A stretch of 63,899 nt of DNA, filler included, from Ministeria vibrans ATCC 50519 (lineage: Eukaryota > Protista > Filasterea): NCBI GenBank assembly GCA_943704425.1. It is 5 parts of 5 records of this genome, joined end to end, with 100 filler letters (N's around TTAATTAATTAA, not from the genome) between each part and the next. Parts side by side here need not be neighbours in the genome. Positions count along the whole stretch, not along the records: positions 31,225 to 57,865 come from CALSCP010000277.1; 4 more parts are not named here. The stretch is one strand, 5' to 3'. A program made the position numbers and the translations under genes. Below the pieces are notes generated by a model. It searched no databases. It had not been told where the DNA came from and was given only the letters and a program-made list of their open reading frames with translations. Below, piece by piece: positions 32,726 to 57,865 of this stretch. Every line of letters starts with the position of its first letter. Within the stretch, counting starts at the first letter, position 1.

Positions 32726-35700
32726 ATGTCTGACCCTAACGCTATCTCACGGCGCTCGATGGTGCGTGCCGGGTACTACGACGATCCCTTTGTGCGGCAT
32801 TTTGTTGCCAAGCTGAAGCAGCGATCGGCCGTTGTGCACCGCCTCCAGTTCGCCATGGCCCACCTCCACGACGCGTTTATCGACGCGTTTGTCACGCGCC
32901 ACGACGGACCCGTGCAGCTTGTACTGGTTGGCTGTGGCGACGACACGAGTACCTTTCGACTTGCGCAACGCCAGGGGTCGAAAGGTCGCTGTGTGCGAGT
33001 GTTCGACCTGGAACGAGACGCAGTGCAATGCAGACGACGGGCAACGATGCAGCCGCACGCCTCTATGCAGGCCTTGATCAGGGATGCATATGCTGAACGG
33101 CCGTGTACTCCATTGGGCGTCGAGCTTTTGCTGTTGTCTGTGGGCGACCCACACACTGAGGTGTTGACGGACGTTCTCCAGCGAGCAGGCTTTGTTGGTG
33201 CACTGCCCACGGCCGTCGTGCTTGGTGACCACCACGCCCTTGTCAGTCCAAATGCACTCTCCATTGTCCTTCAATACCCTTGTGTGACCGCTCTGACGTT
33301 GGCAGAGGACGTTGCAGAGTACGTCTTCACAAGTCAAGTGCCAACTCGTCAATGTTTGTTTGTGTAGGATGCGCGACGGTCATGCCAGCATTGAATCGAC
33401 TTCATTTGATTTGTGGACTTACTACTACACGGTGATGAGTGAGGCGGAGCGCACCAGAGTACAGTCACTGGAAGTCTTTTTCGAGCATGAGACCTGGCTG
33501 CGAGTTGCGCGTGCAAGATGTGTGCGTCTTTACGGGAACACAACCATTTTTTCCCGTGATGTTGACGATGGCCGTTCTTTGTCGGGGGAGTCGTCGTCTT
33601 GCGCAGGGCGTGTTGACAGCACTGTCACTCAGTTAGACATTGGTACGCGAGCGAGTGCCTCGCAGGGACGCATTGCACGTTGGGGGCACACGGTGTGTGC
33701 CAGTAGTGAGGGAGCCGTTCTCTTTGGAGGCTACTCAAGTGCTTCTGCGCCTCTCAATGACGTCCATTGTCTGTCCCGACGCACACTTACATGGCGACCC
33801 CTTGTCACAGGAGGGTGTCCGCCTGCAGGGCGTGCCTACCACGCGGCAGTCTCGCTGGGAGGAATGGCACTCCTTGTGGTAGGTGGACATGGTACTCGCA
33901 CGAGCGCACATCTTCCTCCACGTGCCTGGTTGTTAGATTGTGGTTCTAGCGCGAGTGGTGGACGATGGCTTGATCGTGTGCACCTGCCGGGTTTGGCTCG
34001 GTTTCGCCTGGCCATGGACATGGAACAGATTCACGACGACACGGACGAGGGAAGCACGCAGTGGCGCGTGGTCGCTTGCGGAGGACTTGCAGCTGATGAA
34101 CCAGGTGTGCTCCACGACAATGTTGTCATGTTGCGTCTGCGGCGTGACGAGAATGCGTCGTGGCAGACGCTCGACGACGATTGGCGCACGTTAGTGTTGG
34201 GTACACAACAACGGGGACGCCACTCACACTCCTTGACGCGTCTGAGCGCCGGCACCTTCTTTATGTACGGAGGAATGGACGCGTCAGAGCGGTTGCTTGG
34301 AGATCCCTGTCTCTTGCACCTTGGTGCGACCAACTCTGCAACGATCACGGATCTGACTGCGCATTTTGATCCGCCGCTGCCGCGTGTGTTTGGGCACAGA
34401 ACCACGGCATCGTCGGACGGAACGCGACTCGTCATCCTGGGTGGTGTGTTCGAAGAGAACTATTGTGATCGCGTTGCACTTGTGGTCGATTTGTCGACCT
34501 TTGTGTGGGAGTGGTGTGACACGGAGACTGTGTTGTTGGGTGCGTCGCCCACCGCACTGTATGGCCACGCGACGTGTGTGCTTGCAGACACCAGGCGACT
34601 GCTGCTGTGCGGCGGAGGTGACAGTCTCTTGCATCGGTGCGAACCTGTCACTCGTGTGTTGGAGGTACCCTTTGGATTGGAAAGTGTGGCAGCAGCGGAG
34701 TCTGTTGTTGCGCAGCCGGCGATAGTGACCACGGGAACACCCGCAACGCGTGCGATTCGCTCCGTCGACGCACTGACAGAAGAGGAGTTTGAGCACGCAT
34801 GCGAGCACAGCCGCACACCCTTTGTTCTGCGTGGTTGTTCGCTTGGCACTGCTGTTGAGGAGTGGACACCCGAATTTTTGAGTACTGTGGGTCGGGGTGT
34901 GTCTGTCCCTGTGCACTGCTGCGAAGACGACCAGCTCGATTTTATTGCGAAGAATTATGCGCTGCGCACGCTCGAGTTTGATGAGCTCGTTCGACGTGTG
35001 TTTGACGTGTCGTCGGACGCGCGTATGTATCTGCGCAGCGTGGGCAACGACGTGCGCAAGGAGCGTGCCGACATGCGCCTGACCTTTCCCGCCCTCGGCA
35101 TGACCTTTGCGCTTCCGGCTGCAATGGAGGCGCGAGTGAGTGCGCGCCACTTTTCGACGGCGCTGCGTGTGGGGTCACAGGGCATCCGTGTGTTCACGCA
35201 CTACGACATATGTGACAATGTACTGTGTCAAGTGCGTGGCGAGAAGCGTGTCACCGTTGCGGCGCCCGAGAGTGCGCATGCGCTGTCCGTGCATGGCTCG
35301 CAGTCGCGTGTGGTTGATCTCAAAGACGACTGCGCCTCGCAGCTGCATCCTCGCTTTGCCCAAGTACAGCGCTACGAAACCACATTGGGTCCCGGTGACA
35401 TTCTCTTTATTCCCGCCTGTTGGTACGTTCTCTGCAATTGTTGATTGATTGTTTGTTGGCAGGTTTCATTCCACTGAGTCGCTGACACCGGTGTCTCTGT
35501 GAATGGCAGGTTTCATTCCACCGAGTCGCTGACACCGTGTGTCTCTGTGAATGCGTTTTTTACGCATTTGCAAGCCAGCGACTACTGCCCTCGGGATTTG
35601 TATGGGTCGAAAGATTTGACCGAGGTACGCGATAATAATAATAATTGAAGCATGTCTCACCTTTGTTATGGTAGGCAACCAAGGCATTGGATGATGTAGA

Positions 35701-35797: not shown

Positions 35798-36358
35798 TGT
35801 ATAATAAATGAATGAGGAATTGGCGCCTCCCGACTATACGACAGATCCGTAGACTTAGTGAGTCATAGCCCATTAAAGACTATACAAGAATAGCTCACGC
35901 GTTTCCACTAAAAATACATGGGTTGAATGGTACGCAATAGTGTGCCCATGGGGGCGGGAAGGCAGGTGCTGCTACGCGTCTCAAGGGGCGGGCCAAATGA
36001 ATAGTCACAGCTGGCTGTGGGCCAGAGTGTCTGCTGCCTTGCCGCGCTTGTTGGTGTCTCATGGCGAGTTTGTTTATGGTTACTTAATCAGCTCGTCGCG
36101 CGACAGCGAGGTGAGTGGCTTCCTCGTGTTTTGAGCGAGGACAACTCGTGCGACTCACAACGAACTAACAACTACCTCCCTCATTTCACAACTAACCTTG
36201 GTTAGACAAACTATAAAGGAATACCAATGGATGCTAATGAGTATGACTAGTTTTGAGGAGTCCGTGGCACTTGAATTGAAATAAAATATAATTTATGAAA
36301 ATAAGGTTAAATAGCACTTTTTGGGAAAAACCTTCATCTACCTGAAAATCACCAAATA

Positions 36359-36437
36359 CCCGGCGTCGGGCTGTTAAAGCCCGGCTAGCTCAGTCGGTAG
36401 AGCACAAGACTCTTAATCTTGCGGTCGCCGGTTCGAG
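36359..36437 (+). tRNA. Circularly permuted tRNA-Lys(CUU), copy 1: positions 60-73 at 36359-36372, spacer GTTAAA, positions 1-59 at 36379-36437
   Basis: 5' piece GCCCGGC TA GCTC AGTCGGTA GAGC A CAAGA CT-CTT-AA TCTTG CGGTC GCCGG TTCGAG lacks its 3' end; upstream C CCGGC GTCGGGC T supplies the T-stem and acceptor-stem 3' strands; flanks form a BHB motif; oligo-T terminator follows. Confidence 0.9.
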
Positions 36438-36442
36438 AGTGG

Positions 36443-36453
36443 TTTTTTTTTTT
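36443..36453 (+). terminator. RNA polymerase III oligo-T terminator of permuted tRNA copy 1
   Basis: T11 run right after the GTGG trailer; copy 2 has the equivalent run at 54684-54693 on the minus strand. Confidence 0.75.
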
Positions 36454-36552
36454 GCTTTTTTTGCTTTTATCGTTTTTTTTTTTTCTATGGGTTGAATGAA
36501 ATGAAGTTGAAATCTTCTTTTTTCTGTTTCTGATACTATTGTTCTCCATTGT

Positions 36553-36676
36553 CTACATATCGTTTCTTTTACATGGACGCTCCATCTTCCTGAAATTGGG
36601 GCTGGTCTGTGCCGGAAGCATTGTACTACTCTTAATAATAATGATTTTTTTAATATTATATTTTTTATTAATAATA

Positions 36677-36709
<33 letters not shown>

Positions 36710-36987
36710 TTTATTGTTCTATTGTATTTTGGGTCAAAAGACAGATTGGACCTTGGCCAAGCTCGTGAATTCTTGTGCACTCCGTTGTTCTACACGAAAC
36801 ATAATGAGAAAACAAAAGGAGAGATACCGCGTCACTCACCTCGAATACTCCGCAGTTTGAGGCGCTGTTCGGAGAGCATGGGCGACAGAAATGCCTCAAA
36901 GGTGTCCACGTACGCTTGCAGGCTTGTCTTGTAAATGTCCGTACCTGTACACCCCATATGTGTCAAGACAAATATACTGCAATAAAA

Positions 36988-37040
<53 letters not shown>

Positions 37041-37577
37041 CGTACCATCTTTAGACTTTTTGGGCGAGTGGTCGCCCTCAGCGTATGTGTTGAGCTCGTC
37101 TAACAGCGTCTGGAGGGTAGGCACGGCAAATGGATCAAACGTGTCAAAGTCGGCGGGTGCAATAGGCACGCAAACACGCTGCGTCTTGGGACTGTAAAAG
37201 AGATACGTATTCAGAAGATACTCATCAGAAATAATGGTCACAGTGGAAGGCTTCTTTTTCTCAACGTACTGCACAGCAAAAGGGCTCTTCAGCAAATGGT
37301 TGAGACCCTCGGTGACCGCAATGTCCAATTTGGGGTACGCAAGCTGCAGAATAATCTCTTCCACCCAGTAGCGTTTGAACTGAAACCACAAATCCATTCA
37401 CAAACACGACACAGTGAGACAGGGAAACGGAGACAAAAAAACAGCAAGAAACACACTCACACATGCAAGCACACGTGCCCATAAAAACAGTCACCGACAC
37501 ACCACAAAAAATCACACACACACACACACACACACCACAAAGACACAAAAACACACACACGCCATGAAGACACAAAA

Positions 37578-37617
<40 letters not shown>

Positions 37618-38325
37618 CGACAGGACCGCACCTGTTGCTTTTGAGTAATGTCAACCAGGTCTTGCCAATACTCGTGCGCTTCAGTGCGCGTCTCCAGTCG
37701 CTCGTTCCATGTGCGTCGCAATTCCCCCTGTGCTCCTCCATCTGGCACCAGCTGGACAATCTTTTCGCGTGCCTCTTCATCCACAAACATTGCCTGCTCG
37801 CTTAAAAGCTGCATAAAGTCGTCGTGGATCACTCCCACTGCTCGCTTGAGACTCGGGTGGAGCGAATTGAGCGACACCTTCTTGGCGCGCTCATTGCCCC
37901 CATTTCCCACATTCAAATACTGGCCCACCGACTTGCGACAGTCTTGAGTCAGCTTTCGTGCCCGTTCGTCACACACCCACACGTGAATTCCTGAAATGCA
38001 CCATCGTTAAGCAATCGTAAAAAACACGAGACGACCCCATCAGTGAGTACCTCGTCGTCCAGAGTACACCCACAGCAGGTTTTCAAACCCAAAATCAGAG
38101 CGCAGCGCCGCGTCAAGTACTTTCATAGCAATGCGCATGAAAATCCAGCATTTGGGACAAATCGAGGCACCCGAACAGCACGTTCTGTGCGAGACACGAG
38201 CAGGTAAATCAGTGAGGGAGAGAAAAACAAAAAGAAAAACAGAGAGTGAGACATACAGACGGACGGACACGCTCACAGACAGGCATACACATGCACATAT
38301 CAATTAATACAAACTCACTCGAATA

Positions 38326-38407
<82 letters not shown>

Positions 38408-39262
38408 GTTCTCGTAGTAGTACCTGACTTCGTCGTAATCGGTCATATCAATATCAAAAACGAGCTCACGTTCCCTCGGCTGGAACGCACTTGCCTTCAA
38501 TCCTTTCTTCTCTTTCGGCTACACCAATTGGAATTCACTCAGCTGCCTTACTCGCACCCACCACGACAACTTCCATACCTTGGCAGTGTACACAGCACCA
38601 ATATCAATCTTGTGCGGCAGCTTGTCCGTCATGGCTGCCTTGAGTTCGGCCGCAGACGAGAAGGACAAGTATCGCACGTACACATCGCCCTGCAACATCC
38701 CCAGGTTCACACAAAACAACACACGTGCGCCGCAAGCGCACTGCAAATACAAACACGTGTACGTACCTTGAGCGTGAATGAGAACTCGCGGTGCGTAAAG
38801 TACGTTGGTTGCACTAAACGTTCAATCATGATAATATTTTTTTGTCAGTTTGCGCGCCAAAAGATCAAAAGCGAAACACACTTACCTCCACCGTAACTGA
38901 GCCATCTGTAGAACATATTGTAGTCAAACAACTGTCCGTAGTACATTTTGATCAACTGAAAGGGCGGCAAAACAAAGAGTTGGCGCAACGAGAAGGCATT
39001 TCTCACTTTTCGTTTTTTGCTTATGTACATCGTGAAATTCAAAGCCAGCGTCGTTGTTCATGGGCCTACGCACGACAGCCTGCTCCTGCACGACGGGTAC
39101 AGCGCCAGGTGCGCCCGTAGAAGTCGTTGTGGCGTCCGCAGCCTGCTCGTCGAGCGACTCGGCGTTGTCTTGTTTTGCCGCTGTCATTTCAACGTCTGCG
39201 TCGCCAGGCGACTCGCTCACGAGGCCTCCAACAATGGTTTTCACTTCGGCGTCGACGTCCAT
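36553..39262 (-). CDS. PRIM1: DNA primase small (catalytic) subunit, multi-exon; exact last exon uncertain
   Basis: [104 protein letters not shown]. Confidence 0.95.
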
Positions 39263-43608: not shown

Positions 43609-46167
43609 TCACTTTTTGGCATTCGCTTCGGCTTCTGCTTCGCGCTCAAGAGCCCGGATTTGACGCTCGACGTGACGTTGAGCGAGCGAGTTGACAATGG
43701 AAATAGCAAAGTAGGAGAGCATCGCAATGATGAGCATCTCCCAGACAAAGCCCACGAGAGAGCCCCCTTGGGGTGCTTCAATAGGCACATCGCTGTTCTT
43801 GTCAAACTTGGCACGGTACCGAACCACAGCACCACTCACCTGGCCGATGAGAGGCGACGGCAGCACAGTGGCAGCCCAGCGGATTACGGCGTCGAGTACC
43901 GGTTCACTGAACATGAGCACCACAAAAAACATCTGCGAACAAGAGCAAAGTGCATGTGATGAGCTCGCGTACGAGAAAAAGAAAGACGGGGAGGGGTGCG
44001 TCTCACCTGAATGTGCATTTTGACGACGGCCTTGCCAATGAGAGTCGCACCAAAGAACGTGCCAAATGGCACCAGAAAATGCCCACAGGTCACACCAGCG
44101 AGGTCAAACAGAGGATTCGGGATCTGCACAGAAACGAGGGGAGGAGGACGGGGCATAACAGAAAAATATCAACAACAAATCAATGTGTAACAATTGCACA
44201 GAGTGTGCCTTACGGAAGCGCACGCAAGAATGCCCCAGAAGCCGAGGCGAGACACAAGGGAATGGGTGAAGCGCTTGAGGCGCGTCCACAGTGTCTGGTC
44301 GGTCTCATCCTCCATCTGACGCATCTCCGCCTCAAGTTCATCCTGTACCGAGCCACTCAGTCGCGCCGCACGCGCAATAAAGTATGGCGGAAGCTCACCT
44401 GCCAAGACATACCAAAATAAGACGCCATAAGACAACAATAAAATGACAGAGAAAATAAATGAGAAAACATGCAAGAGAATGCAAATCAAAAAGAAAGACA
44501 AAGAGTGGAAACGGGGGGGGGGGGGGTAGAGTCACACGAACAGATGATAGTCATACCAATGGCGGTGCCTGCGCCCCACAAAAAGGCCTCGAGACGCACT
44601 TTGCTCACAATGCCCCAAATGGTCACAGCCGTCGCACCCGACGCAGTTCTGTGAAAGCGCTTTGTTAATCGAATCGCACGCCATTGAAGTGGAAACGTCA
44701 TGAACACTCCCCACTCACACAACACCTAATACACACTCACTAACTCACAACACATAGCCACCAACACACCACACCACACAGACACACACAAACATACATA
44801 TACAATACATAGAAAAAAAAAAGAAAAAGAAAAAACGCCGTACACAGGACAGGAGAGCATGCCAACTTCGCGTGAGACAAAGTCCAGAGTGCCGCACTTC
44901 CACGCAGCCATGGTCACTTCGGCAATAAAGGGACCCGTGTACAGGAGGAATGTGTGCAAGCCAGTGCCCAGACCCACCGACGAAAGCACACCAAGCCACA
45001 CCCAGTACGAACAGTACCAGATCTCTTCAATAATATCCTCCACACTGCACAAAAAAGAGACCAACAACAGAATTACTATCGCACTCTCTGACTGTTTCTC
45101 TCTCGGTTTCTTCTTCTTCTTCTTCTTCTTCTTCTTCTTCTTCTTCTTCTTCTTCTTCTTCTTCCTCCTCCTCCTCCTCTTCTTCTTCTTCTTCTTCTTC
45201 TCTCTCTCCCTCTCTTTCTCCAACTCTCTCTCTCTCTCAAAGTATGTACCGATCCGAGTGGTGGCTCTTGAGCCCAATGGACTCGGGTGACAGGTACACT
45301 ACAAGGATGGAAAGAGCCACGGCCAAAAGCAGTGTGACGGCAGAGCGCTAAAACAATCAAAGATGAATTGGTTGCTCTTAATGAGCAATGTAATAACAAT
45401 AATAATAATTATTATTATTATTATTATAATTATTATTGTTCTATACCCACTCGACGAGCCAGCTCAGAATATGCTGCAAGAGTGTCAAGGTCTCTTTGAA
45501 AAAGAACATGACGGTGTGGATCGGTGATCGCAACAGCGTCAAGTGATGCAATCGATCTTTGTATTCGTGTGCCTAAGTCAAGAAGTACACGAATTAGTAT
45601 GGATGTAACTTGCATGGGACGGATGGCTTGGTACGTTTTGAGGGGGCAACGCGACATCGGGCGATGCTGAGACTGTCGGCGTGGGGGGCGATGCAGCTGT
45701 GGGCTGCATACGACCGCGCGCGGGCGAGCGGCTGCGACTGGGCGATCGGCGACGCGTCTTGGTCGAGGCAGCAGTTGCAGCAGCCGCAGTTGCAGCAGCA
45801 GTTGCAGTCGCAGCTGCGCCCGAACCGTCGCCAGCAGACTCGACAGCCCGCGCCGCAATGCGCGTCTTTGCACTGCGCCTGGGAGGCGTGTGTGACGGCG
45901 AGGCACTGCGGCGTGTTGGGGCTGGGGATTTCGCGCGAACCGTTGTGCGCGACCGTGTCGAAAACGATGGCGAGGCCAAGGCTGACGCGGCAGTCGAGGT
46001 TGCGCGCACGCGAGCAGAGGCCTGCAAGGAGACAAGAAAGGTTCATACACATGGCACGCGGCAGTCGATGGGGCGGTGGGACGAGCGTGAGGTCGGAGTA
46101 AGAGAGAATTCCGGTTGAGTTGGAACATAGAACATACTCGATCAAGAGACTTCGAGCGCAGGGGCAT
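43609..46167 (-). CDS. VMP1: Vacuole membrane protein 1 (DedA/VTT scramblase), multi-exon
   Basis: [109 protein letters not shown]. Confidence 0.95.
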
Positions 46168-47144: not shown

Positions 47145-50100
47145 TTACACAAGATCTTTCATCTCTCCAATCGAAATGCGCGAGCCGGCAGCTTCCGCCT
47201 GCTGATCAAACATGTACAAAATGTGACAAAAGGATGGACGCGTCAGTTGGTTGGGCTGCCACATGGCTTGCATGAGGTCGAGCAAAGGTATGGGCCAGTT
47301 GCGTGCTTTGGTGTGAAACAGGTCGCATTTGGTGGAGGGCCGTAAAGGGTTGCTGGAGCTCTTGACACGGTTGTAATTTTCATCTTCCACCTGATAGCGC
47401 TGCTGCATAATGACCTCCCACATGATGATAGCAAAGGCATACACGTCGATGGGCTGACCATAGAATCGCGCCCGTGGCTTCAGCAATTCGGGTGCCTTGT
47501 ATATCGCCGTCCCAAAGATCTCATCGTTCTTGCTCAATTTCACATAGTTGCGAGGAATTTTCGCAGGGCGTCGTTGAGCGGTGGAGCGCACATGACGTCG
47601 AAAGGAACCGCCACCCTCGTCAAAGACGCTGTCGTCGCCCTGCTCCATCAGAGGCTCCGTCAAGTCCGATGACTTGGTGCTCCAAAAGGAGAGCACCGAG
47701 CGTCCCAGCGAGCGCGATCGAGACACATGTTGCTCCACCGACGGCAACGACAATCGTGGTACCGGTATACTCCCACTCTCGGACTGGTAGAGCGAACGTG
47801 AGCGGTACACGTTGGATTCGGCATCGTCGGTGGAAACTGAGCCACGATCGGATCGTAGGTCGCCATCGGTGTCGGACAGCCTATCAGCAGCATCGTAGTC
47901 GCAATCGTCGCCATTAATGTTGTCGTCGCCGTTGTCGCCGTGAACGTTGACATCTTCGTTGTCGTCTTCGTCGCTCTGTTGGCTCTCCTCGGCGTTCCCT
48001 TCAAACACCGCTCCATGGTACTCGACGAGCTTACACTCGCCAAAGTCGCACACCTTGGCAACCAGTCTCGTTGTGCTGTCGTCGATGTGCTCCAGCGCAA
48101 CCAGAACATTGTCGAGCTTGAGGTCACGATGGATGACACGGAAATTCTGCAGTCGCCCATCGGGTTGAGCGCGTGGAATCACAGCGTTGTGGACATACTC
48201 CATGCCCCGCGCGACCTGGCGCAGTAAATCTTGTCGTACCTCACGTGTGACGCGCAACCGCCGGCTCACTACGTCGACAAGGGAGCCTTTGCACAGGGGC
48301 ATGACGTAGAAGGGCGAGTTGTTCGCACTGTGCTTTCCATAGCCGTACAGCTCTATGACATTGGGGTGTCGAAGCAGTTGCAATAGATTCATCTCGTCGA
48401 GCAAGGCCTTACGCTCCACCGCAAAATAATCGGTGGCGGTGGCCGTATTGTCACGCCATGTCGATGCTTTCGCCTGCAGCTCTTTGACAGCAACCTTGCG
48501 CACATGACACCATGTTGCCTCGAGCACCTTACCTCCACCGCCAACTCCAACAACGCCCGCCTCGCCCTCGCGGAACGCCAAGTCCTTTTCTCCAATTAGC
48601 CAACGATGGCGGATCTCCTCAATGTGCCGACGATTGTTTTCGCCCATTTGATTAATGTCGATCACGCGACGCTTCTCGGCGTGGCGCCGATATACCACAA
48701 GGGCAACCAAGGCAATGAGCAGCAGGCCCGCAATGCTGCCAACGATGGGTGCCCATCGATCGTCGGTGTTACGTTCCTCCGACTTGCAATTAGTGTTCAG
48801 CGGACCATCACAACCAGCAGTACAAGAGGGGTCACAGTCGTAGCAACTCGAGCCCAGCGGGTACATGCTCGTCTCGTTGCAGGCGCGTAGGCACTTGGGT
48901 ACGTTACTGGTGGCGGAAGTGCTTGATGCCGACGGCTGATACGAGAGGTAGGGTGAATCACAGCGGCACGTGACATCAAATGAATAATACACCGTATCAC
49001 TAGCATCCATGTCGTACGCAAAGCTCGCCGTTTCGGGATTCTTAAGATGGCATGTTCCGTGTCCCGAGCATGGCAAGTCACTGACATCACGACTGGCTGT
49101 GTCGAGTCCCTCACACAAAAAGACATACTGGCAGTTTGGCCCGGTCCAACCGTTGGGACAGCAGTCGCGCGGCGACGGTCCGTAGCAGCCGGCAAATCCC
49201 TGAAAGGAACACTCGGTGGAGCAGAAGCCCTCGCAGACGGGTTGCGTTCCATACATGTTGGGTGGGCAGCTGGGACCATTGGAGCCGTTGTCCGAGTAAA
49301 ACTTGTTATAGAAGATGGTTGCAATGCCCCAACCACGCGTGTACGTCAGTGGAGTAGTGACGACAGACTCCAAGTCGTTTCTACGTTACATTAAATATTT
49401 TGAGCAGAAGAAGAAAATAAAAATAATAATAATAACATCTACGCTGCGATGCAACTCTAATATCGCCGACGACAAGAAAAAATGACGCAAAAAACATAAA
49501 AGGACTAATTATGTCAGGTGGTGCACAATAATCAATCAAAAAGATGAACATGCATGATTAAAGAATGATACGCAGGACAGTTCTTCCGTCATTAAACTTA
49601 TTGGTATTTATACGTCTCATAAATTGAACGCAACTTACGAGGCAAGATTGATGGCGGCAATAGGTGGAATGGTGAGCGAGCCATTGAGACTACAATTGGC
49701 AGCGGAGATAGTCAGACGACGGAGTTGCGATGGAGGGAAGTAGGTGAAGAGTGAAGAGAGGGAATCGAGAACGAGAAGCGGGTTGTGAGAAATGCTAAGA
49801 ACCGACAGAACAGGGAGCGAGACGATGGCGGCGGGGTTGAGGACGGAGAGGCGGTTCTCGTCGAGAAAAAGCATTTCAATGTTGGAAGGCAGTCCAAAGG
49901 GCACCTTCTCGAGAAGGTTCGACTCGAAGGAAAGGGACGACAGAAGATACCAGCGGGAGAAGACGCCCGCCTTGACCGTACGGAGTTTGTTGCCGGCAAG
50001 ACTGAAGGAAGTAAAGGAGTAGAGATCGTTGAGCCAGCACTCGTCGAGGGAGGTCAAGTTGTTATTGGTCAGGTAGACGCCGGTGACAAAGACACCCGAA

Positions 50101-53100
50101 AAGATGCCACAGGGCAATTCCGTGAGCCAATTGTTCGAGAGGACCACGTTGCGCAGACTGTGAATGCCTTGGAAGGCTTCCGCAGGCACGCTGGTGAGTT
50201 GCATGCCCGAAATACTGAGGGTCTCGAGCGCCGTCAGCTGTCGAAGTGCTTCGAGTGGATACTCTGAGAGCAGATTGCGATCGATGCGGAGGACCCGAAG
50301 GGAGCGCAAGCCATTAAAGGTATCGGGTGGCAAGTCTGAGATATAATTGTCGACGAGAGATAGACGCTCGAGAGAGCGCATGGACTGGAACAGACCGACG
50401 GGCAACGTGGCAAGGCCTGTCTCGTTGAGAGACAGGTCAAGGAGGTTGACGAGCGTTGTGGCAATGGCACTGATGGAGTCGCCCACGGGATTGGCATCGA
50501 GCACGAGCTGGTGGAGGGCGTACATCGAGGCAAAATCGGCGGGGACAAGCTTGGAGATGTTGCAGAAGCTCAAGGAGAGCGTCTCAAGAGAGTAGAGGGA
50601 GCGCAACGCGACGGGAAACTCCATCAGGGGATTTTCATTGAGATTGAGATTCACTACAAAAACAGAGAAATTAATACGAAATTTAATACAGAATAATGCG
50701 GATGAATCACGTAATAATTATAATAATTAATTTATTTATTTAATAATAATAATATTATTATTAATTTTATCATTATTATTATTATTATTATGATTATTAT
50801 TATTATAATTATTATTATTATTATTATTATTATTATAATAATAATAATAATAATAATTAATAATTTATAGATAAAAGAAGAAGCCCACAATCTCAAAGTA
50901 TAAATAGAAAGAAACGATCAAGAAACATTACAAACCAAAATTGTTCCATACTGAGTCCATTGAGAATGTCTTTCGGAAAGAGATTATCGTCGAGCTTGAC
51001 AATGTTGTTTCGCGAGAGGTCGATACTGCGGATGTTGACAAGGGAAGTAAAGGCATCGGCGGGAAGACTGGGAATTTCGGTGTCACTGAGGGACAGAACG
51101 CGCAGCTCGGAGAGGGAGGAAGCGCGCAGGGCAGAGGGATACGCTTGCAAAGGATTACTGTCCAGCAGTAGTTCGGTAAGTGCTATCGACTGATTGAAGA
51201 GGTCCGGTGGAAGCGTTGGTTCTTCCAGCTCATTGAACCGCAAATCAAGCAAAATCAAATTTGGCAAATTTTGAAGAGCTATCCAGGCGATAAAATAAAG
51301 TAAATAATTAGTAATGATTCAATAATTATTATAATTATTATTAATTGTTTCTTATTATTATTATATACAAAACTTACTTGAAGGAGGGAGAACGGAGATT
51401 TGGGTGCCGGCGAGGAGAAGAACCTGCAGAGTAACGAGCCTGGACTGGAGCAGAAATTCCGGAAAGCAACCAAGTGGATTACCCTCGAGATCCAAAAGCG
51501 AGATGGACCGATGGCGTGAGCCAAAGAGAAAGGGTGGAATAGAACTACAGGAAAGATTGTTCGAGTGCAAGTTTACTTCCAAGAGGCTTGGCATGGCGGC
51601 AAAGGCGTCGGTGGGAATACGCGACAGACGACAATTTCGAAGGGAGATGTGCTCAATGTACTCGAGAGAGGTGGTTGTGAGCTGGAGAGCACGGGGAAAA
51701 TTGAGAAAAGGATTGTTGTCAAGCACGAGGGTTGTAGGACGACTTGTGTTGCTTGCAAATGCGTCCGGATCAACGGAATTTTCGTTCAACTGGTTCGAGG
51801 AGAGATCCAACAGGCGAAGAGAAGCCATAGCGGCAATGATGTGAGCGGGTAGCTCCAGTAGACCGGCGTTGCGCAAGTCAAGTGTGCTCAGCTGGCCAAA
51901 GGTGGAGTTGAGGAGACCGGCAGGAAAGCGACCGAGGGGATTACTCTCGAGGCTGAGCCACACAAGGGTGTCGGCCAAAGGCTGGAGGGTGGAGGAGCCG
52001 AGGGACTCGCTAGAGAGTTGATTGGACGCCAAATTGAGGTGCTGGAGCGAAGTGAGATTGGCAAAGGGTGACTGTCCCAGATAGTGGAGGAGCGTTGAGT
52101 TGAGCACAAGAGTACTGAGGACTGGCAGCGATGCGTGACTGACGGCCTTGGGAAAGGTGCCCAGAGGATTACCATCGAGGTAGAGGTGCGAAAGACGAGA
52201 GTTACTTTCAAAGAGCGTCGAGGGAAGAAGCGCTTCTTGAAGAAGAGCGCCATGCGATGCCTTGAAGTTGTTCGACAGACTGAGTTGTTGAAGGAAAGGC
52301 ATGGCAGCAAAGGCAGAAGAGGGAAATGCGAAAATTTGAGCGGAGGCAAGAGAGAGAATGGTGAGCGACGAGAGAGACTGAATTTGCGTAGGAAATGAAC
52401 GCAAGGGATTTCCATTGAGGTAGAGGGTGTGCAAATGGGGGAGACCATCAAAAGCGAGGGGGTCGATGCTGCTCGATGACAGCTGGTTGTCGCTAAGAGC
52501 GAGCAATGTCAACGCGGGGAGCATTGCAAAAGCTCGAGCAGTGACGTTGCGCAGATTTGTTTCGCTGAGCGCAAGTAACGAGAGGGAGGGTAACAGCAAA
52601 GGCAGGTTGAGATCGAGCGTACTGGTGAGAACATTGCCCGAGAAAATGAGAGTGGTCAAATTGTGATGGCGTGTTCCGTTGAGCACGCCGGGTGGGAGAC
52701 CCTCGAGGACATTGCCCTGCAACGAGAGATAGGATAGCGACGAGAGGGAGGCAAAGGACTCGGAAGAAATGCCACCGTTGGAGAGGCCCGCATAGCCAAG
52801 GTCCAGGTGCGAGAGTGACGCGAGTTGGGAATCGCGCAGCGCGTTGGGCACGACACCGAGAGGATTGCGAGCCAACGAGAGGTGTTGAAGGGAGGCGACG
52901 CCATCAAAGAGATTTTGCGGTAACTCAAAGAGCTGGTTTCCCGAGAGGTCGAGCGAGGACAATTGGGGCATGTGGTGGAAGGAAAAATTAGCGTTGAGTG
53001 ACCTGAGATTTGTGTTGCTAATGTTTAGGGCACGCATGAGGGGAAAGGATGTGGTTGCAAGCGACGAAGGAAGGCGGCCGAGGGGATTGCCGCTGAGGTC

Positions 53101-53817
53101 AAGTGAAACAAGCTGAGTGGCATTCTGGAAGGCGCCCGGAGCAAGTGAGCCGTTGGTGGCGCCGGTGAGCTCGTTGAAGGCAAGAGAGAGAGTGGTCAGG
53201 TTGGAAAGCGTGCTCAGGCTCGTCTCGCCAAGTGTGTGCAAGCGGGTGAAGGACAAATCAAGACGAGTGATGGAGGCAGCGTGACGTGTGGACAGAACGG
53301 AGGGGAACGATGCGAGAGGGTTGTCGTTGAGGAGGAGGGTGGAGAGACGAGTGTTGTTGAAGGCATTGGGTGAAAAATATTGAGCGCGAATCAAGTTTGC
53401 CCCAAGCGACAGGAACTGCAGTTTGGGGTTGTGTGCAAAGGCATTGGCGGGTACGTTGCGGACTCGCGAGGCAGTGAGGGTAAGGGTGGTGAGGTTGGGG
53501 GCGTTTGAAATAAAATTGGAGGGAAAGCATTCCAAGGGATTGAAGAAGAGATTGAGGGTTGTGAGCGAGGAGAACGGCAAGAGAGACGCCTGTTCGAGGC
53601 TGGAGCAGGTGAGGAAATTGTCTGAGAGATCGAGCGTGGCGACGACGTGAGCGACAGCCGAGAAGTCTGGGAGTTGACGCAAGAAGTGGCGTGCACAATC
53701 AACGGTAAGCGTCGGAGTGGGCGTACATTGGCACACGGTGCAGACAGGAGGCTGTTGCGCAGCAAGACAGGCCAGAGGAGCAACGACGAGAAGAGCTAGG
53801 CTTGTGAACAGAATCAT
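47145..53817 (-). CDS. LRR receptor-like kinase: signal peptide, LRRNT, several dozen LRRs, EGF/furin-like Cys-rich region, TM, TKL-type kinase
   Basis: ORFs 51361-53817, 50893-51267, 49635-50654 and 47145-49373 are separated by AT-rich introns; LxxLxLxxN repeats; CSGHGTC, CYDCDPSCTAGCDGP; TM IVGSIAGLLLIALVALVVY-RR; GVGGGGKV, VAVK, HRDLKLDN, DFG, GTAIYKAPE, DVYAFAIIMWE. Confidence 0.88.
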
Positions 53818-54698
53818 GCAAACAGAGCGAGGAGAATTGAAAGGAAGTTGAAAGTCCCTAGGCGGACTAAGGAGCTAGGGAGGCCGAGTGGAGGGGACAG
53901 AGGAGGGAGCAGTAGGAGTCGGGAGAGTTCAGATGTGGACTACGGAGTAGCGAGTGCACCTGGTTAGTAGAGTGAGGAGCAAAATAATTGATGCATAATA
54001 AATGATTGTATATTGTATATTTATATATTAATTTTTTTTTCTGATTTTTCACTGACTCAAAGTGAATTATAACAAGATACCTTTGTATCTTCAAGCAAGG
54101 GCTCTGTTTGCGAACCACGGTCGCAGCTTGTCGGCTGCCATGTACAAGACGCGTCGCTTTGACCGTTGTCATCGTTTAGGTGTCAAAATGAAAACATATT
54201 ATTTTCTAAAAAACGACGTGAGAAATGTCTTGCAAGGATTAAGAGCGACAACTGACAAGTGACAAGTCTGTCAACTGTCAAGTGACAAGTGCAGGACTGA
54301 AGGTTAGAAGGCATCGAGCAACAACTTATAAAAAGCATAGTCAAGTGAGTCATTATTTGATTGGTTGTAGGTATAAAATTTGGATCAGTCGACGTTCTTG
54401 ACAAGACACTGAAGACAGACTTTTGACAGACAGGGAGACACCCTACTCACTACTGACCCTAGCTAGTAGCTAATAGCTATGAGAGTTTGCAAGGCGGTCT
54501 GGCTGTGTCTTTGCGACTGAAGCAAAGTCGCTCACATGACGTCGAGAAACACCGCGAACGTCGGTAATGGGCGCATTGGTCACTCTAAGAGACAAGAGTC
54601 TAAGTGAGTCTCTAACTCTCGAACAACTCTCAAACAATAAAAAAAATAAAATAAAAAAAATAAAAAATGCCGGAAATAAATGCAAAAAAAAAACCACT

Positions 54699-54778
54699 CT
54701 CGAACCGGCGACCGCAAGATTAAGAGTCTTGTGCTCTACCGACTGAGCTAGCCGGGCTTATAACAGCCCGACGCCGGG
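54699..54778 (-). tRNA. Circularly permuted tRNA-Lys(CUU), copy 2: positions 60-73 at 54778-54765, spacer GTTATAA, positions 1-59 at 54757-54699
   Basis: Reverse complement matches copy 1 in both tRNA pieces and the BHB flanks; the spacer is 1 nt longer. Confidence 0.9.
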
Positions 54779-55046
54779 TATTTGGTGATTTTCAGGTAGA
54801 TGAAGGGTTTTCCCAAAAAGTGCTATTTAACCTTATTTTCACGTGTACTTTCAAAATTTCTGTGTTGACAGAATTCGTCGCTGTACTTAACAGTAACCTT
54901 TTCAGGTCACTAAACAATGATGCGCTACTCTCCAGCAGAGTTTTGAATGAATGTGGTAGCGATATATATAAGTTGAAATTTTCGATGCTTTGCGCACACA
55001 CACACACAGTTTTTGAACTAGAATCTGATTATTCTTTTCTTCTTCT

Positions 55047-56108
55047 ATGAAACGAACAACATTGTTCTCTCGCGTTGACCGAGCAGGGGCGCAGACGCTC
55101 AACGACGAAAGCGACGACGAGAGCGACGAGGACGAAGCACGGCGTCAAGAGCAACTTGCCCAGCGACGCAAGGAGGCAAAGGAGCGAATGAGACGCCAGC
55201 TTGAGGCGGAAGAAGCCAGGCGCAAGGGACTTGTGAGTGGTGCTAGTGATGCCAACGAAGAAGGTAAGAGAACAGACACACACAATACAAACAAAAGGGA
55301 AATGTTGATTGGTAGCAGACGAGAAGGACAACGACGACGAGAAGGACGACGCTGCCATGATTGAACTGGCGGCTACGCGGCTCATTAAGCGCCGGCAACA
55401 AGTAACTGCGCAACGTGCGCAGCGTGAGGAGCGTTTCGGCGGCACCTGCGAAGACAACAACACCGACTTGATCTTGAATCGTCCTGGACATCCGACCAGG
55501 AAGAGAAAGGAGTCTGACCGGGATGAGGGCGGACCGATCAGCGGCGCGGGTGGTGGTCCTGACGGGGGTGATGGGAAGGAGCTGCAGGGAGACGATGATG
55601 ACGACTTTTTGGTCATGGAAGTGTACGAGACTGAGTCGAAGAAAAGGAAAGCGCGCACTGCTTCAGGTGCGAGGCGCAGCAAGGCAAAAACAGCAGTTGA
55701 AAATGACGTGAACGTGAGCAGCGTGGACGATTTGAAGACTGCTACCAAGTCTGGGGACAAAGCGGCAGTCAAGGTGGCGAAATCCGCACAGCAACGAGAG
55801 GCGCTGCGCTTCAGCAATGTGACTTTTCTCGACGAGTTGCCCGACTACACTCAAGTGGAAGAGCGGGACGACTATCTTGCAGACGCTAGTGTGCGCATTC
55901 CAACACTATGTGGAGTTGTTCCGCCAGCCGAAGACGCCCCCTTTGTGCTGGATGCCGGTCGTAACATTTCCGTGCCCGCCTCTATCAGTCGATACTTACG
56001 CTCTTACCAGCGCGAAGGCATTCAATTTTTATGGGGACGTCTTGCCAAAGCAACAGGAGGAATTCTTGCCGATGACATGGGATTGGGAAAGGTACAGTAC
56101 CTGAATAC

Positions 56109-56182
<74 letters not shown>

Positions 56183-57526
56183 TTATTATTATTATTGTTA
56201 TTCAATTTTTTTTTATTAATTTTATTTTTATTATTAAGTTTTATTTTTATTTTTATTTTTTATTTTTTATTATTAATTTTATTTTATTTTTATTATATCA
56301 ATTTTATTATTATTATTATTAAGTTTTATTTTTATTTTTATTTTTTATTTTTTATTATTAATTTTATTTTATTTTTATTATATCAATTTTATTATTATTA
56401 TTATTATTTTTATTATTATTTTTATTTTTATCATGTGAAATAGTAGGATTTATTGACTCTTTTCTCCTAAAACAGACGGTTCAAGTCATTGGACTGCTTG
56501 CGGCAGTGTTTGGAAAGCTGGGTCGTACGGATGACCGAGTGCCACGCGAAGCTGCGCTGCGATCGGGCACAAGTGTGGTTGCACCAGTGCTCATTGTGGC
56601 GCCTGCCGTGGTCGTGTACAACTGGCAAGACGAACTGCAGACGTGGGGTCTATTCCACACGGCCGTGCTTCATGGCGCCGCTAAGGAAGAGACTCTTGAC
56701 ATGCTCAGTGCAGGTCGCTGTGAGGTCGTCCTTACAAGCTACGAGACGGCCGCCCAAGAAACACACCGTCTCTCCTCTGTCCGATGGCTCGTAAGCTTAA
56801 AACAAAAGAAATAAAAACCAACAAAAATTAAGAAACTAATTCTATTAATGTTATTGTGCATTATCATCTGCGTGTTGTTTCTTTCAGATGACCGTCTTTG
56901 ATGAGGGTCACAGGTTGAAAAATCCTTCGAGTCAGCTGTCGATGGCTGCCGGTCGTCTGGTGACCAACTCGCGGTTTATCCTGTCGGGCACTGCTGTGCA
57001 GAATAACCTAATGGAGCTGCACACGCTCGTGTCTTTTTGTGACGCCTCCATCTTTGGCGAGAAGGGCAACTTCAAGAAAACTTACGTTGCGCCTATCGGA
57101 GTTGGGCATCAGATCACGGCAACGGTTGAACAGGTCAATGTGGCGCGACGCAAACTCGAACGGCTCTGTCAGCGCCTCCGACCAGTGCTACTACGACGCA
57201 CCAAGGCCATCATTCGCGATCAGCTGCCTTTGAAGAACGACCGCGTGCTCTTCTGTGATATATCTCAGGCTCAGCGTGACGCTTACAATGGTCTCCTCGA
57301 CAGCAACGACTTTCGCTTTCTCTACGATACCGCCCTCTACAGCGAACAATGCCAGCAGGCGTCCAAGACGTCGCGCGCCGACGACCGTGCCCATGAATTG
57401 TACCTCTACGAGTTGTACGGCTTTCACGCTCGCGATCGCCGGTACATTGTTTTTCCCTGTCTCGTCTCGTTGCGCAAAGTTGGTAACCATCTGGCTCTTT
57501 TGGTGCCCAGTGACATCCAGCGCAGG
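55047..57526 (+). CDS. ERCC6L2: SNF2-family helicase, ERCC6L2/RAD26-like; 3'-truncated at contig end
   Basis: [87 protein letters not shown]; helicase C-terminal lobe not in this contig. Confidence 0.8.
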
Positions 57527-57758
57527 GTACGAAAACGAAACTTTAATAACTCGCATCCGTTTTATCATACATAAGCTCGTATGAAACTTTGTCGACATGA
57601 GAGATTCGATTGTTGCGATTCTTTTTTAAATTGCAACTAAATGACACAAAAAATTGCGCACGGAAAGATTTTTTTGACAGAGTTCTACACAGAATCGATT
57701 ATTGCTTATGACCTTTGTCATGTTTAACATAATAATTAACAACAACAACAACAACAAC

Positions 57759-57865
<107 letters not shown>

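Follow-up and report, generated by a model that had tools for sequence, protein, structure and literature searches.

We report two circularly permuted loci for tRNA-Lys(CUU) in DNA from the filasterean protist Ministeria vibrans ATCC 50519 (assembly GCA_943704425.1). The window, that is, the whole stretch of DNA presented, comprises 63,899 nucleotides (filler included) in five joined parts. The piece analyzed is a 26.6-kb part of it (CALSCP010000277.1, positions 31,225 to 57,865; all coordinates refer to the whole stretch). In both loci, the 3′ part of the tRNA precedes the 5′ part, and swapping the two parts restores a complete cloverleaf. Judging from their sequence and predicted folding, both loci are probably functional nuclear genes of type IV (permuted at position 59/60), whose tRNA would be matured via a circular intermediate.

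Structure of the permuted gene

We find, from a reading of positions 36200–36620, that copy 1 is ordered as tRNA positions 60–73 (36359–36372), a 6-nt spacer, and tRNA positions 1–59 (36379–36437). This is the layout that an earlier reading of the sequence alone (hereafter, the sequence-only reading) had described, and each of its segments is found in place, base for base. The features of copy 1 are as follows.

36296–36344, plus strand: upstream block, kept in both copies with one substitution at 36330 (copy alignment)
36307–36314, plus strand: TATA-like element TTAAATAG, ~31–38 nt 5′ of the leader helix, within the block common to both copies
36345–36352, plus strand: leader helix strand AAAATCAC, pairs with the trailer
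36353–36356, plus strand: central-helix strand CAAA, can pair with T-loop positions 54–57 (three of four pairs)
36357–36358, plus strand: bulge bases TA; the third base of this 3-nt bulge is C60 (36359)
36359–36372, plus strand: tRNA 3′ part, consisting of position 60, the T-stem 3′ strand (61–65), the acceptor 3′ strand (66–72), and discriminator T73
36373–36378, plus strand: intervening sequence GTTAAA (6 nt)
36379–36437, plus strand: tRNA 5′ part (1–59), consisting of the acceptor 5′ strand, D arm (A box), CTT anticodon arm, variable loop, T-stem 5′ strand, and T-loop positions 54–59 (most of the B box)
36438, plus strand: trailer A, the third base of the bulge that begins with A58 and G59
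36439–36446, plus strand: trailer helix strand GTGGTTTT, pairs with the leader
36443–36453, plus strand: T11 run, an RNA polymerase III (Pol III) terminator (sequence read)

When the parts are swapped (1–59 followed by 60–73), ARAGORN identifies a tRNA-Lys(ctt) of 73 nt whose cloverleaf is regular, as the sequence-only reading had proposed. The swapped tRNA has a 7-bp acceptor stem with one G·U pair, a 5-bp T stem, and the T loop TTCGAGC, and its sequence carries the conserved eukaryotic nucleotides T8, G18G19, T33, T54T55C56, and A58. CCA is not encoded in either copy. In native order, by comparison, ARAGORN calls no tRNA anywhere in the 26.6-kb piece. The Rfam tRNA model recovers only positions 8–63 (32.1 bits against a gathering score of 29), a partial match that borrows the trailer GTGGT as a poor T-stem strand, mimicking four of the five pairs. 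Standard scans thus miss the gene or truncate it, as had been anticipated.

The minimum free energy (MFE) fold of positions 36345–36449 is the permuted cloverleaf together with an 8-bp leader/trailer helix, in agreement with the sequence-only reading. Its energy is −38.6 kcal/mol (z = −3.3), a stability that none of 200 shuffled sequences reached. The acceptor stem is closed by the spacer in this fold, which has normal D and anticodon arms, a T stem, and an open T loop clamped by the leader/trailer helix. The swapped cloverleaf and the fold together support the original proposal of a circularly permuted tRNA-Lys(CUU) gene with its junction in the T loop.

Both copies also bear the signals of a single transcription unit: a TATA-like element upstream, a run of T (T11 or T10) after the trailer, and a spacer free of runs of four or more T. 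By analogy with Cyanidioschyzon merolae (PMC3978253), the conserved upstream TATA-like block is a candidate upstream Pol III promoter.

A second copy on the minus strand

A second, near-identical unit, which the sequence-only reading did not mention, lies on the minus strand at 54841–54684. It was traced via an identical partial Rfam tRNA match, and its features are as follows.

54793–54841, minus strand: upstream conserved block with the same TATA-like element
54779–54792, minus strand: leader, identical to copy 1
54765–54778, minus strand: tRNA 3′ part (60–73), identical to copy 1
54758–54764, minus strand: intervening sequence GTTATAA (7 nt, one base more than copy 1)
54699–54757, minus strand: tRNA 5′ part (1–59), identical to copy 1
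54684–54698, minus strand: trailer (A, GTGG) and T10 terminator run

The copies are 18 kb apart and in opposite orientation. Their alignment shows identity across the 73 tRNA positions, the leader, and the trailer. Similarity is sharply bounded, extending from 36296/54841 (49 nt before the leader helix) to the T run, and defines a 158-bp unit with unrelated flanks. Only three differences separate the copies: the upstream base at 36330, an additional spacer T in copy 2, and a T run of 11 versus 10. All three fall outside the 73 tRNA positions and both helix strands, which would occur by chance with a probability of ~0.06. With two copies and three differences, purifying selection on the tRNA and the helices is only suggested.

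The permuted arrangement is not due to chance

A permutation-aware scan, which the sequence-only reading had also recommended, was run within the 26.6-kb piece. It took 7-bp acceptor closures with spacers of 0–80 nt on both strands (n = 4,142) and combined them with junctions at positions 10–66 and all plausible tRNA lengths. The resulting constructs were filtered for a T arm and then submitted to ARAGORN. The filter passed 89 constructs, and all six that were called as tRNAs lie at the two loci, with none elsewhere. The same scan made no call in 71 kb of control DNA (the Monosiga brevicollis TYW4 neighborhood and the contigs Ga0558119_01573 and Ga0558118_05176), and no intact T arm occurs elsewhere in the 26.6-kb piece.

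The leader/trailer helix was assessed separately. For a random 14-mer leader of local base composition, the probability of forming all eight trailer pairs in the single register that yields a bulge-helix-bulge (BHB), plus at least three of the four central pairs, is 7e-4. Because the scan matches only the two loci, the controls yield none, and the helix has this low probability, the permuted arrangement is not due to chance.

Junction and bulge-helix-bulge motif

Junctions at 58/59, 59/60, and 60/61 all give a valid cloverleaf. The BHB cutting rule alone picks 59/60 among these three joints, and the junction is therefore assigned on BHB geometry. One strand of the motif consists of the T-stem 5′ strand, positions 54–57 (central helix), the bulge of A58, G59, and trailer A (cut after G59), and the trailer helix. 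The other consists of the leader helix, CAAA, the bulge of U, A, and C60 (cut before C60), and the T-stem 3′ strand. The outer helices (the 8-bp leader/trailer helix and the 5-bp T stem) and the two 3-nt bulges are in exact BHB register, and with each bulge cut after its second base, G59 is joined to C60.

Pair probabilities are 0.5–1.0 for the leader/trailer helix and 0.85–0.98 for the T stem. The central helix has three of four pairs (C-G, A·C, A-U, and A-U, in order). Since it carries the A·C mismatch and is not predicted to form, the BHB is, in the folding model, a relaxed form rather than a canonical one. Relaxed forms (“no H” and hBH) have been described for known permuted tRNAs and introns (PMC3978253). 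The earlier claim of a BHB at 59/60 accordingly holds for the 8-bp helix, the 3-nt bulges, and the joining of G59 to C60, and has to be amended for the central helix, which is weak and noncanonical. In sequence and modeled structure, then, the loci appear as type IV genes with a relaxed BHB, from whose geometry we infer the exact junction.

Read from the sequence, the geometry is that of a canonical pre-tRNA in which the T arm stands in for the anticodon arm, so that 59/60 corresponds to the sixth/seventh loop position, like 37/38. Furthermore, U54 has as its partner the leader base that lies three positions before the cut. Eukaryotic endonucleases require an anticodon-intron pair (PMC3978253), and we interpret the pair between U54 and the leader as a likely analogue of this pair in eukaryotic pre-tRNAs.

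Comparison with known permuted and split tRNAs

Soma’s review counts 34 permuted tRNA genes, from six algae and one archaeon, with five junction types (PMC3978253). Type IV comprises the Ala(TGC), Arg(CCT), and Lys(TTT) genes of C. merolae and the iMet and Tyr genes of Thermofilum pendens. In this set, intervening sequences span 1–74 nt, and the 6- and 7-nt spacers of the two loci fit known permuted genes on this account. The algal genes have an upstream TATA-like element, a downstream T stretch, a spacer free of terminators, and no encoded CCA. They are matured by BHB cleavage and ligation to a circle, followed by RNase P as well as tRNase Z; the C. merolae type IV genes are expressed through a circular intermediate. 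Permuted genes are proposed to derive from interrupted tRNA genes arranged in tandem (all PMC3978253). Later additions came from chlorarachniophyte nucleomorphs (PMC4494063) and the green alga Auxenochlorella (PMC12633428). According to a 2026 review, eukaryotic cases are still confined to red and green algae and nucleomorphs (PMC13578239). The occurrences listed in the sequence-only reading agree with Soma 2014 (PMC3978253). Searching the literature from 2015 on for “permuted tRNA” brought up no report from any heterotrophic protist.

The closest likeness is to C. merolae type IV genes (Soma et al. 2007; PMC3978253). Shared features are the 3′ part before the 5′ part on one strand, a T-loop junction (here probably 59/60), a short intervening sequence that closes the acceptor stem, BHB-type pairing of leader and trailer (relaxed here), an upstream TATA-like element, a downstream T stretch, and the lack of CCA. 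One of the three C. merolae genes is also for a lysine tRNA, although its anticodon is UUU rather than CUU, and the spacers there are longer (8–38 nt, versus 6–7 nt here). The likeness is drawn from gene layout, and the genome studied here, unlike that of C. merolae, is rich in microsatellites with long intergenic regions. Expression of the C. merolae genes is proven.

The iMet and Tyr genes of T. pendens (Chan et al. 2011, PMC3218864) share the 59/60 junction (probable in the present loci), a very short intervening sequence (1–7 nt), and a relaxed or strict BHB. However, these archaeal genes encode CCA and contain a 37/38 intron. Here we find neither, and the context is eukaryotic and nuclear.

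The type II (37/38) genes of Ostreococcus, Micromonas, chlorarachniophyte nucleomorphs, and Auxenochlorella (Maruyama et al. 2010; PMC4494063; PMC12633428) follow the same gene logic and have a proposed circular intermediate. Their junction, in contrast, lies in the anticodon loop, the usual site of the eukaryotic endonuclease, while a T-loop junction would need recognition that is independent of the mature domain. The split tRNAs of Nanoarchaeum equitans and the two-piece transfer-messenger RNAs (tmRNAs) and rRNAs from permuted genes likewise involve rearranged pieces joined via complementary flanks. Those pieces, however, are transcribed separately or left unligated, whereas here they are 6–7 nt apart in one apparent transcription unit.

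Proposed maturation

Maturation of the tRNA could proceed as follows. Pol III would start a few bases 5′ of 36345, placed not by the A box alone but by the TATA-like block, and would stop in the T run, giving a precursor of ~105 nt (leader, 60–73, spacer, 1–59, trailer). This precursor is predicted to fold into the cloverleaf, in which the spacer closes the acceptor stem and the 8-bp leader/trailer helix clamps the open T loop. The tRNA splicing endonuclease would then take the relaxed BHB, with the T stem acting as the anticodon stem, and cut after the second base of each 3-nt bulge. tRNA ligase would seal G59 to C60, producing a circular intermediate. Finally, RNase P and tRNase Z would excise the 6- or 7-nt spacer, and CCA would be added.

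Within 36379–36441, the A box is intact, as are 9 of 11 B-box positions, and their spacing is normal (sequence read; Rfam positions 8–63). TFIIIC could still bind the permuted gene because a 59/60 permutation leaves the A box and most of the B box ordered in the 5′ part.

Several points weigh against maturation by this route. A start directed by TFIIIC would normally fall inside the 3′ part and give a useless, truncated RNA; initiation would therefore have to take place unusually far upstream, 34 nt or more before tRNA position 1. The conserved TATA-like block presumably directs it, and this is the least secure step of the mechanism. The central 4-bp helix of the BHB is absent from the MFE fold, and forcing it costs +4.3 kcal/mol (pair probability, ~0.004). 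The identity of the two copies is accounted for equally well by recent duplication. Lastly, no locus from a relative was found for covariation. A metagenome scan with the pattern of positions 36359–36383 returned at least 120 GC-rich chance matches; among the matches listed, none had a tRNA 5′ part downstream. Exact look-ups of two neighboring open reading frames (ORFs) found no further contig. As for an independent origin and a special endonuclease acting outside 37/38, both raised by the sequence-only reading, these can only be inferred.

Alternative explanations

The loci might be dead relics. On this view, a tandem tRNA-Lys array would have been rearranged, and what is left of it (one gene’s 3′ end followed by the 5′ part of its neighbor) would have been duplicated recently as the 158-bp unit and would remain unprocessed, with linear genes elsewhere serving the cell. 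The three differences between the copies are indeed too few to prove selection, and the central BHB helix is weak. Redundancy is also plausible, given that tRNAscan-SE lists both normal and “pseudogene” tRNA-Lys(CUU) genes in choanoflagellates (PMC6188563). We nevertheless consider a relic unlikely. A perfect cloverleaf, a TATA-like element, and an adjoining terminator are not expected to persist in dead DNA, and the 8-bp leader/trailer helix occupies the sole register that yields a BHB (P ~7e-4). In addition, the leader and trailer, as read, have no leftover similarity to the missing tRNA halves, and the differences between copies all spare the tRNA and the helices.

The arrangement of promoter elements raises another possibility, namely that transcription starts from the internal A/B-box promoter only. 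This would yield a 3′-truncated tRNA-like RNA (1–59 plus trailer) with another role or none. The intact A box and 9 of 11 B-box positions are in keeping with such a product, as is the trailer GTGGT, which mimics four of five T-stem pairs. Yet the exact 14-nt upstream complement, the leader/trailer helix, and the conserved 49-nt upstream block would all be left unexplained, which makes this reading very improbable. We give marginally less credence to a two-piece tRNA, in which cutting of the precursor at the spacer and trimming at the T loop would not be followed by ligation, so that the fragments 1–59 and 60–76 form a nicked tRNA. The 12 bp of the acceptor and T stems would hold such fragments together, and the weak central helix could impair recognition by the endonuclease. 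However, the permuted-tRNA literature offers no precedent that we found for unligated nuclear tRNAs, all studied permuted tRNAs are ligated to a circle, and the exact BHB register favors the splicing machinery. Least probable of all is an assembly or chimera artifact. The piece is a draft contig, but the two copies are independent and have different flanks. Moreover, the surrounding 4 kb is found in 20 public runs from 10 studies (seawater and algae metagenomes among them), with at least half of its words in 13 of the runs, and an independent marine metagenome contig in ENA (3.2 kb, ending short of the tRNA) encodes the neighboring protein exactly.

Two further identities were rejected. An ordinary truncated tRNA pseudogene does not fit, as an exact 14-nt complement 6–7 nt upstream restores the 3′ end in both copies. 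A tRNA-derived short interspersed nuclear element was dismissed on three counts: a T run, not an A run, follows the tRNA sense strand, only two copies occur in 26.6 kb, and the 158-bp unit is sharply bounded.

Significance

If the two loci are working permuted genes, they belong to a known kind (type IV), and the novelty would lie in the host, possibly a new lineage for such genes, and in endonuclease action at the T loop outside Cyanidioschyzon. A stronger claim, which we put forward tentatively and regard as possible rather than probable, combines three elements. The host, possibly a heterotrophic marine flagellate related to choanoflagellates, would be the first eukaryote with a permuted tRNA gene outside the red and green algae and the nucleomorphs derived from them; the T loop (59/60) would be where its endonuclease and ligase act; and the loci would be a main source of tRNA-Lys(CUU).

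Few genomes are known to contain permuted tRNA genes (Cyanidioschyzon, Mamiellales, Auxenochlorella, chlorarachniophyte nucleomorphs, and Thermofilum), and the eukaryotic ones all belong to lineages of red or green algal descent. A type IV gene at work in another lineage would mean that the trait arose repeatedly, or that it is older and more widespread than thought. It would also mean that a eukaryotic splicing endonuclease outside Cyanidioschyzon cuts a T-loop BHB, away from 37/38. tRNA censuses that rely on standard scanners would count too few such genes or give them the wrong label, which touches analyses of codon usage and tRNA supply, for example in choanoflagellates. The locus further provides a compact (~105 nt) substrate for assays of the endonuclease, ligase, RNase P, and tRNase Z.

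Choanoflagellate tRNA-Lys(CUU) loci

Southworth et al. (PMC6188563) ran tRNAscan-SE on choanoflagellate genomes. For Monosiga brevicollis, in which AAG is the optimal lysine codon, they list one normal tRNA-Lys(CUU) gene and five CUU “pseudogenes,” four of which are 91–93 nt long and lie in tandem on scaffold 26 (CH991567, 250951–252741). Salpingoeca rosetta has six 75-nt Lys(CTT) calls, on ACSY01000655 and ACSY01000666 (PMC6188563). These loci of unusual length may be noncanonical rather than dead genes, and we treat them as a lead, not as evidence. If the stronger claim made above is correct, the 91–93-nt M. brevicollis “pseudogenes” might be related noncanonical genes. The M. brevicollis TYW4 neighborhood contains no tRNA, permuted or otherwise.

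Genomic neighborhood

The 26.6-kb piece is ordinary eukaryotic nuclear DNA, with G+C of ~50%, long microsatellites, and long intergenic regions. Its genes encode a TYW4/TYW5-like fusion, a DNA primase small subunit, an actin-related protein, a receptor-like kinase, leucine-rich repeat (LRR) proteins, and an SNF2 helicase. Protein searches of large databases found no near-identical annotated protein, and this rules out C. merolae, Ostreococcus, Micromonas, Bigelowiella, Auxenochlorella, and other annotated genomes as the origin of the piece.

Approximately 900 nt upstream of copy 1 lies the TYW4/TYW5-like tRNA wybutosine fusion gene:

32726–35444, plus strand: TYW4/TYW5-like wybutosine fusion (LCM methyltransferase, Kelch propeller, JmjC/Cupin_8)

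It consists of two overlapping ORFs in different frames (32726–33367 and 33312–35444), and this overlap implies that a short intron or a frameshift is present. Even the nearest relatives found for the TYW4-like protein share only 33–37% identity with it. The best named ones are choanoflagellates, within a taxonomically mixed set (Salpingoeca kvevrii, Monosiga brevicollis, the cercozoan Papus, Chromosphaera, two diplonemids, Perkinsela, and an aphelid). In a quick tree, the protein is not placed with choanoflagellates and joins, on a long branch, two proteins from GC-rich, compact contigs. By these protein comparisons the host would be a marine eukaryote, and the holozoan-like affinity suggested in the sequence-only reading is no more than a possibility. 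The closest full-length TYW4/TYW5-like relatives are on the JGI metagenome contigs Ga0558119_01573 and Ga0558118_05176, which have 64% G+C, are gene-dense, and appear to be intron-free. Their neighboring genes encode a penicillin amidase, a GH3 protein, and a SET/MYND/SH3-kinase set. The contigs may come from a bacterium, which seems the probable source, or from a very compact eukaryote, with a eukaryote-type wybutosine fusion gene.

Downstream of copy 1, a run of ~40–50 A (36986–37037) adjoins the DNA primase small-subunit exon (36963–37397, minus strand) and yields an ORF tail of poly-Phe. An Rfam “CrcZ” match at 36998–37111 was rejected as a poly-A artifact. Microsatellites of the types (CA)n, (CTT)n, (ATT)n, and (AAT)n (37540–37620, 38300–38410, 45096–45240, 50720–50900, 56085–56460, and 57725–57865) occupy much of the noncoding DNA, and the ATT and AAT arrays mutually form long imperfect inverted repeats.

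Three minus-strand genes at 47145–49373, 49635–50654, and 51361–53817 encode the receptor-like kinase and two adjoining LRR_8 proteins. The kinase combines a Cys-rich ectodomain with a single membrane span and a Ser/Thr-type catalytic loop (HRDLKLDN). Database searches found no close paralogue or orthologue of the kinase or the LRR_8 proteins; the best database matches of the LRR proteins are animal LRR proteins of the chaoptin/artichoke type (24–32% identity). The SNF2-family helicase gene (55309–57574, plus strand) lies ~500 nt from copy 2 and consists of at least two ORFs (55309–56322 and 56888–57574), divided by an (ATT)n-rich stretch that is presumably an intron.

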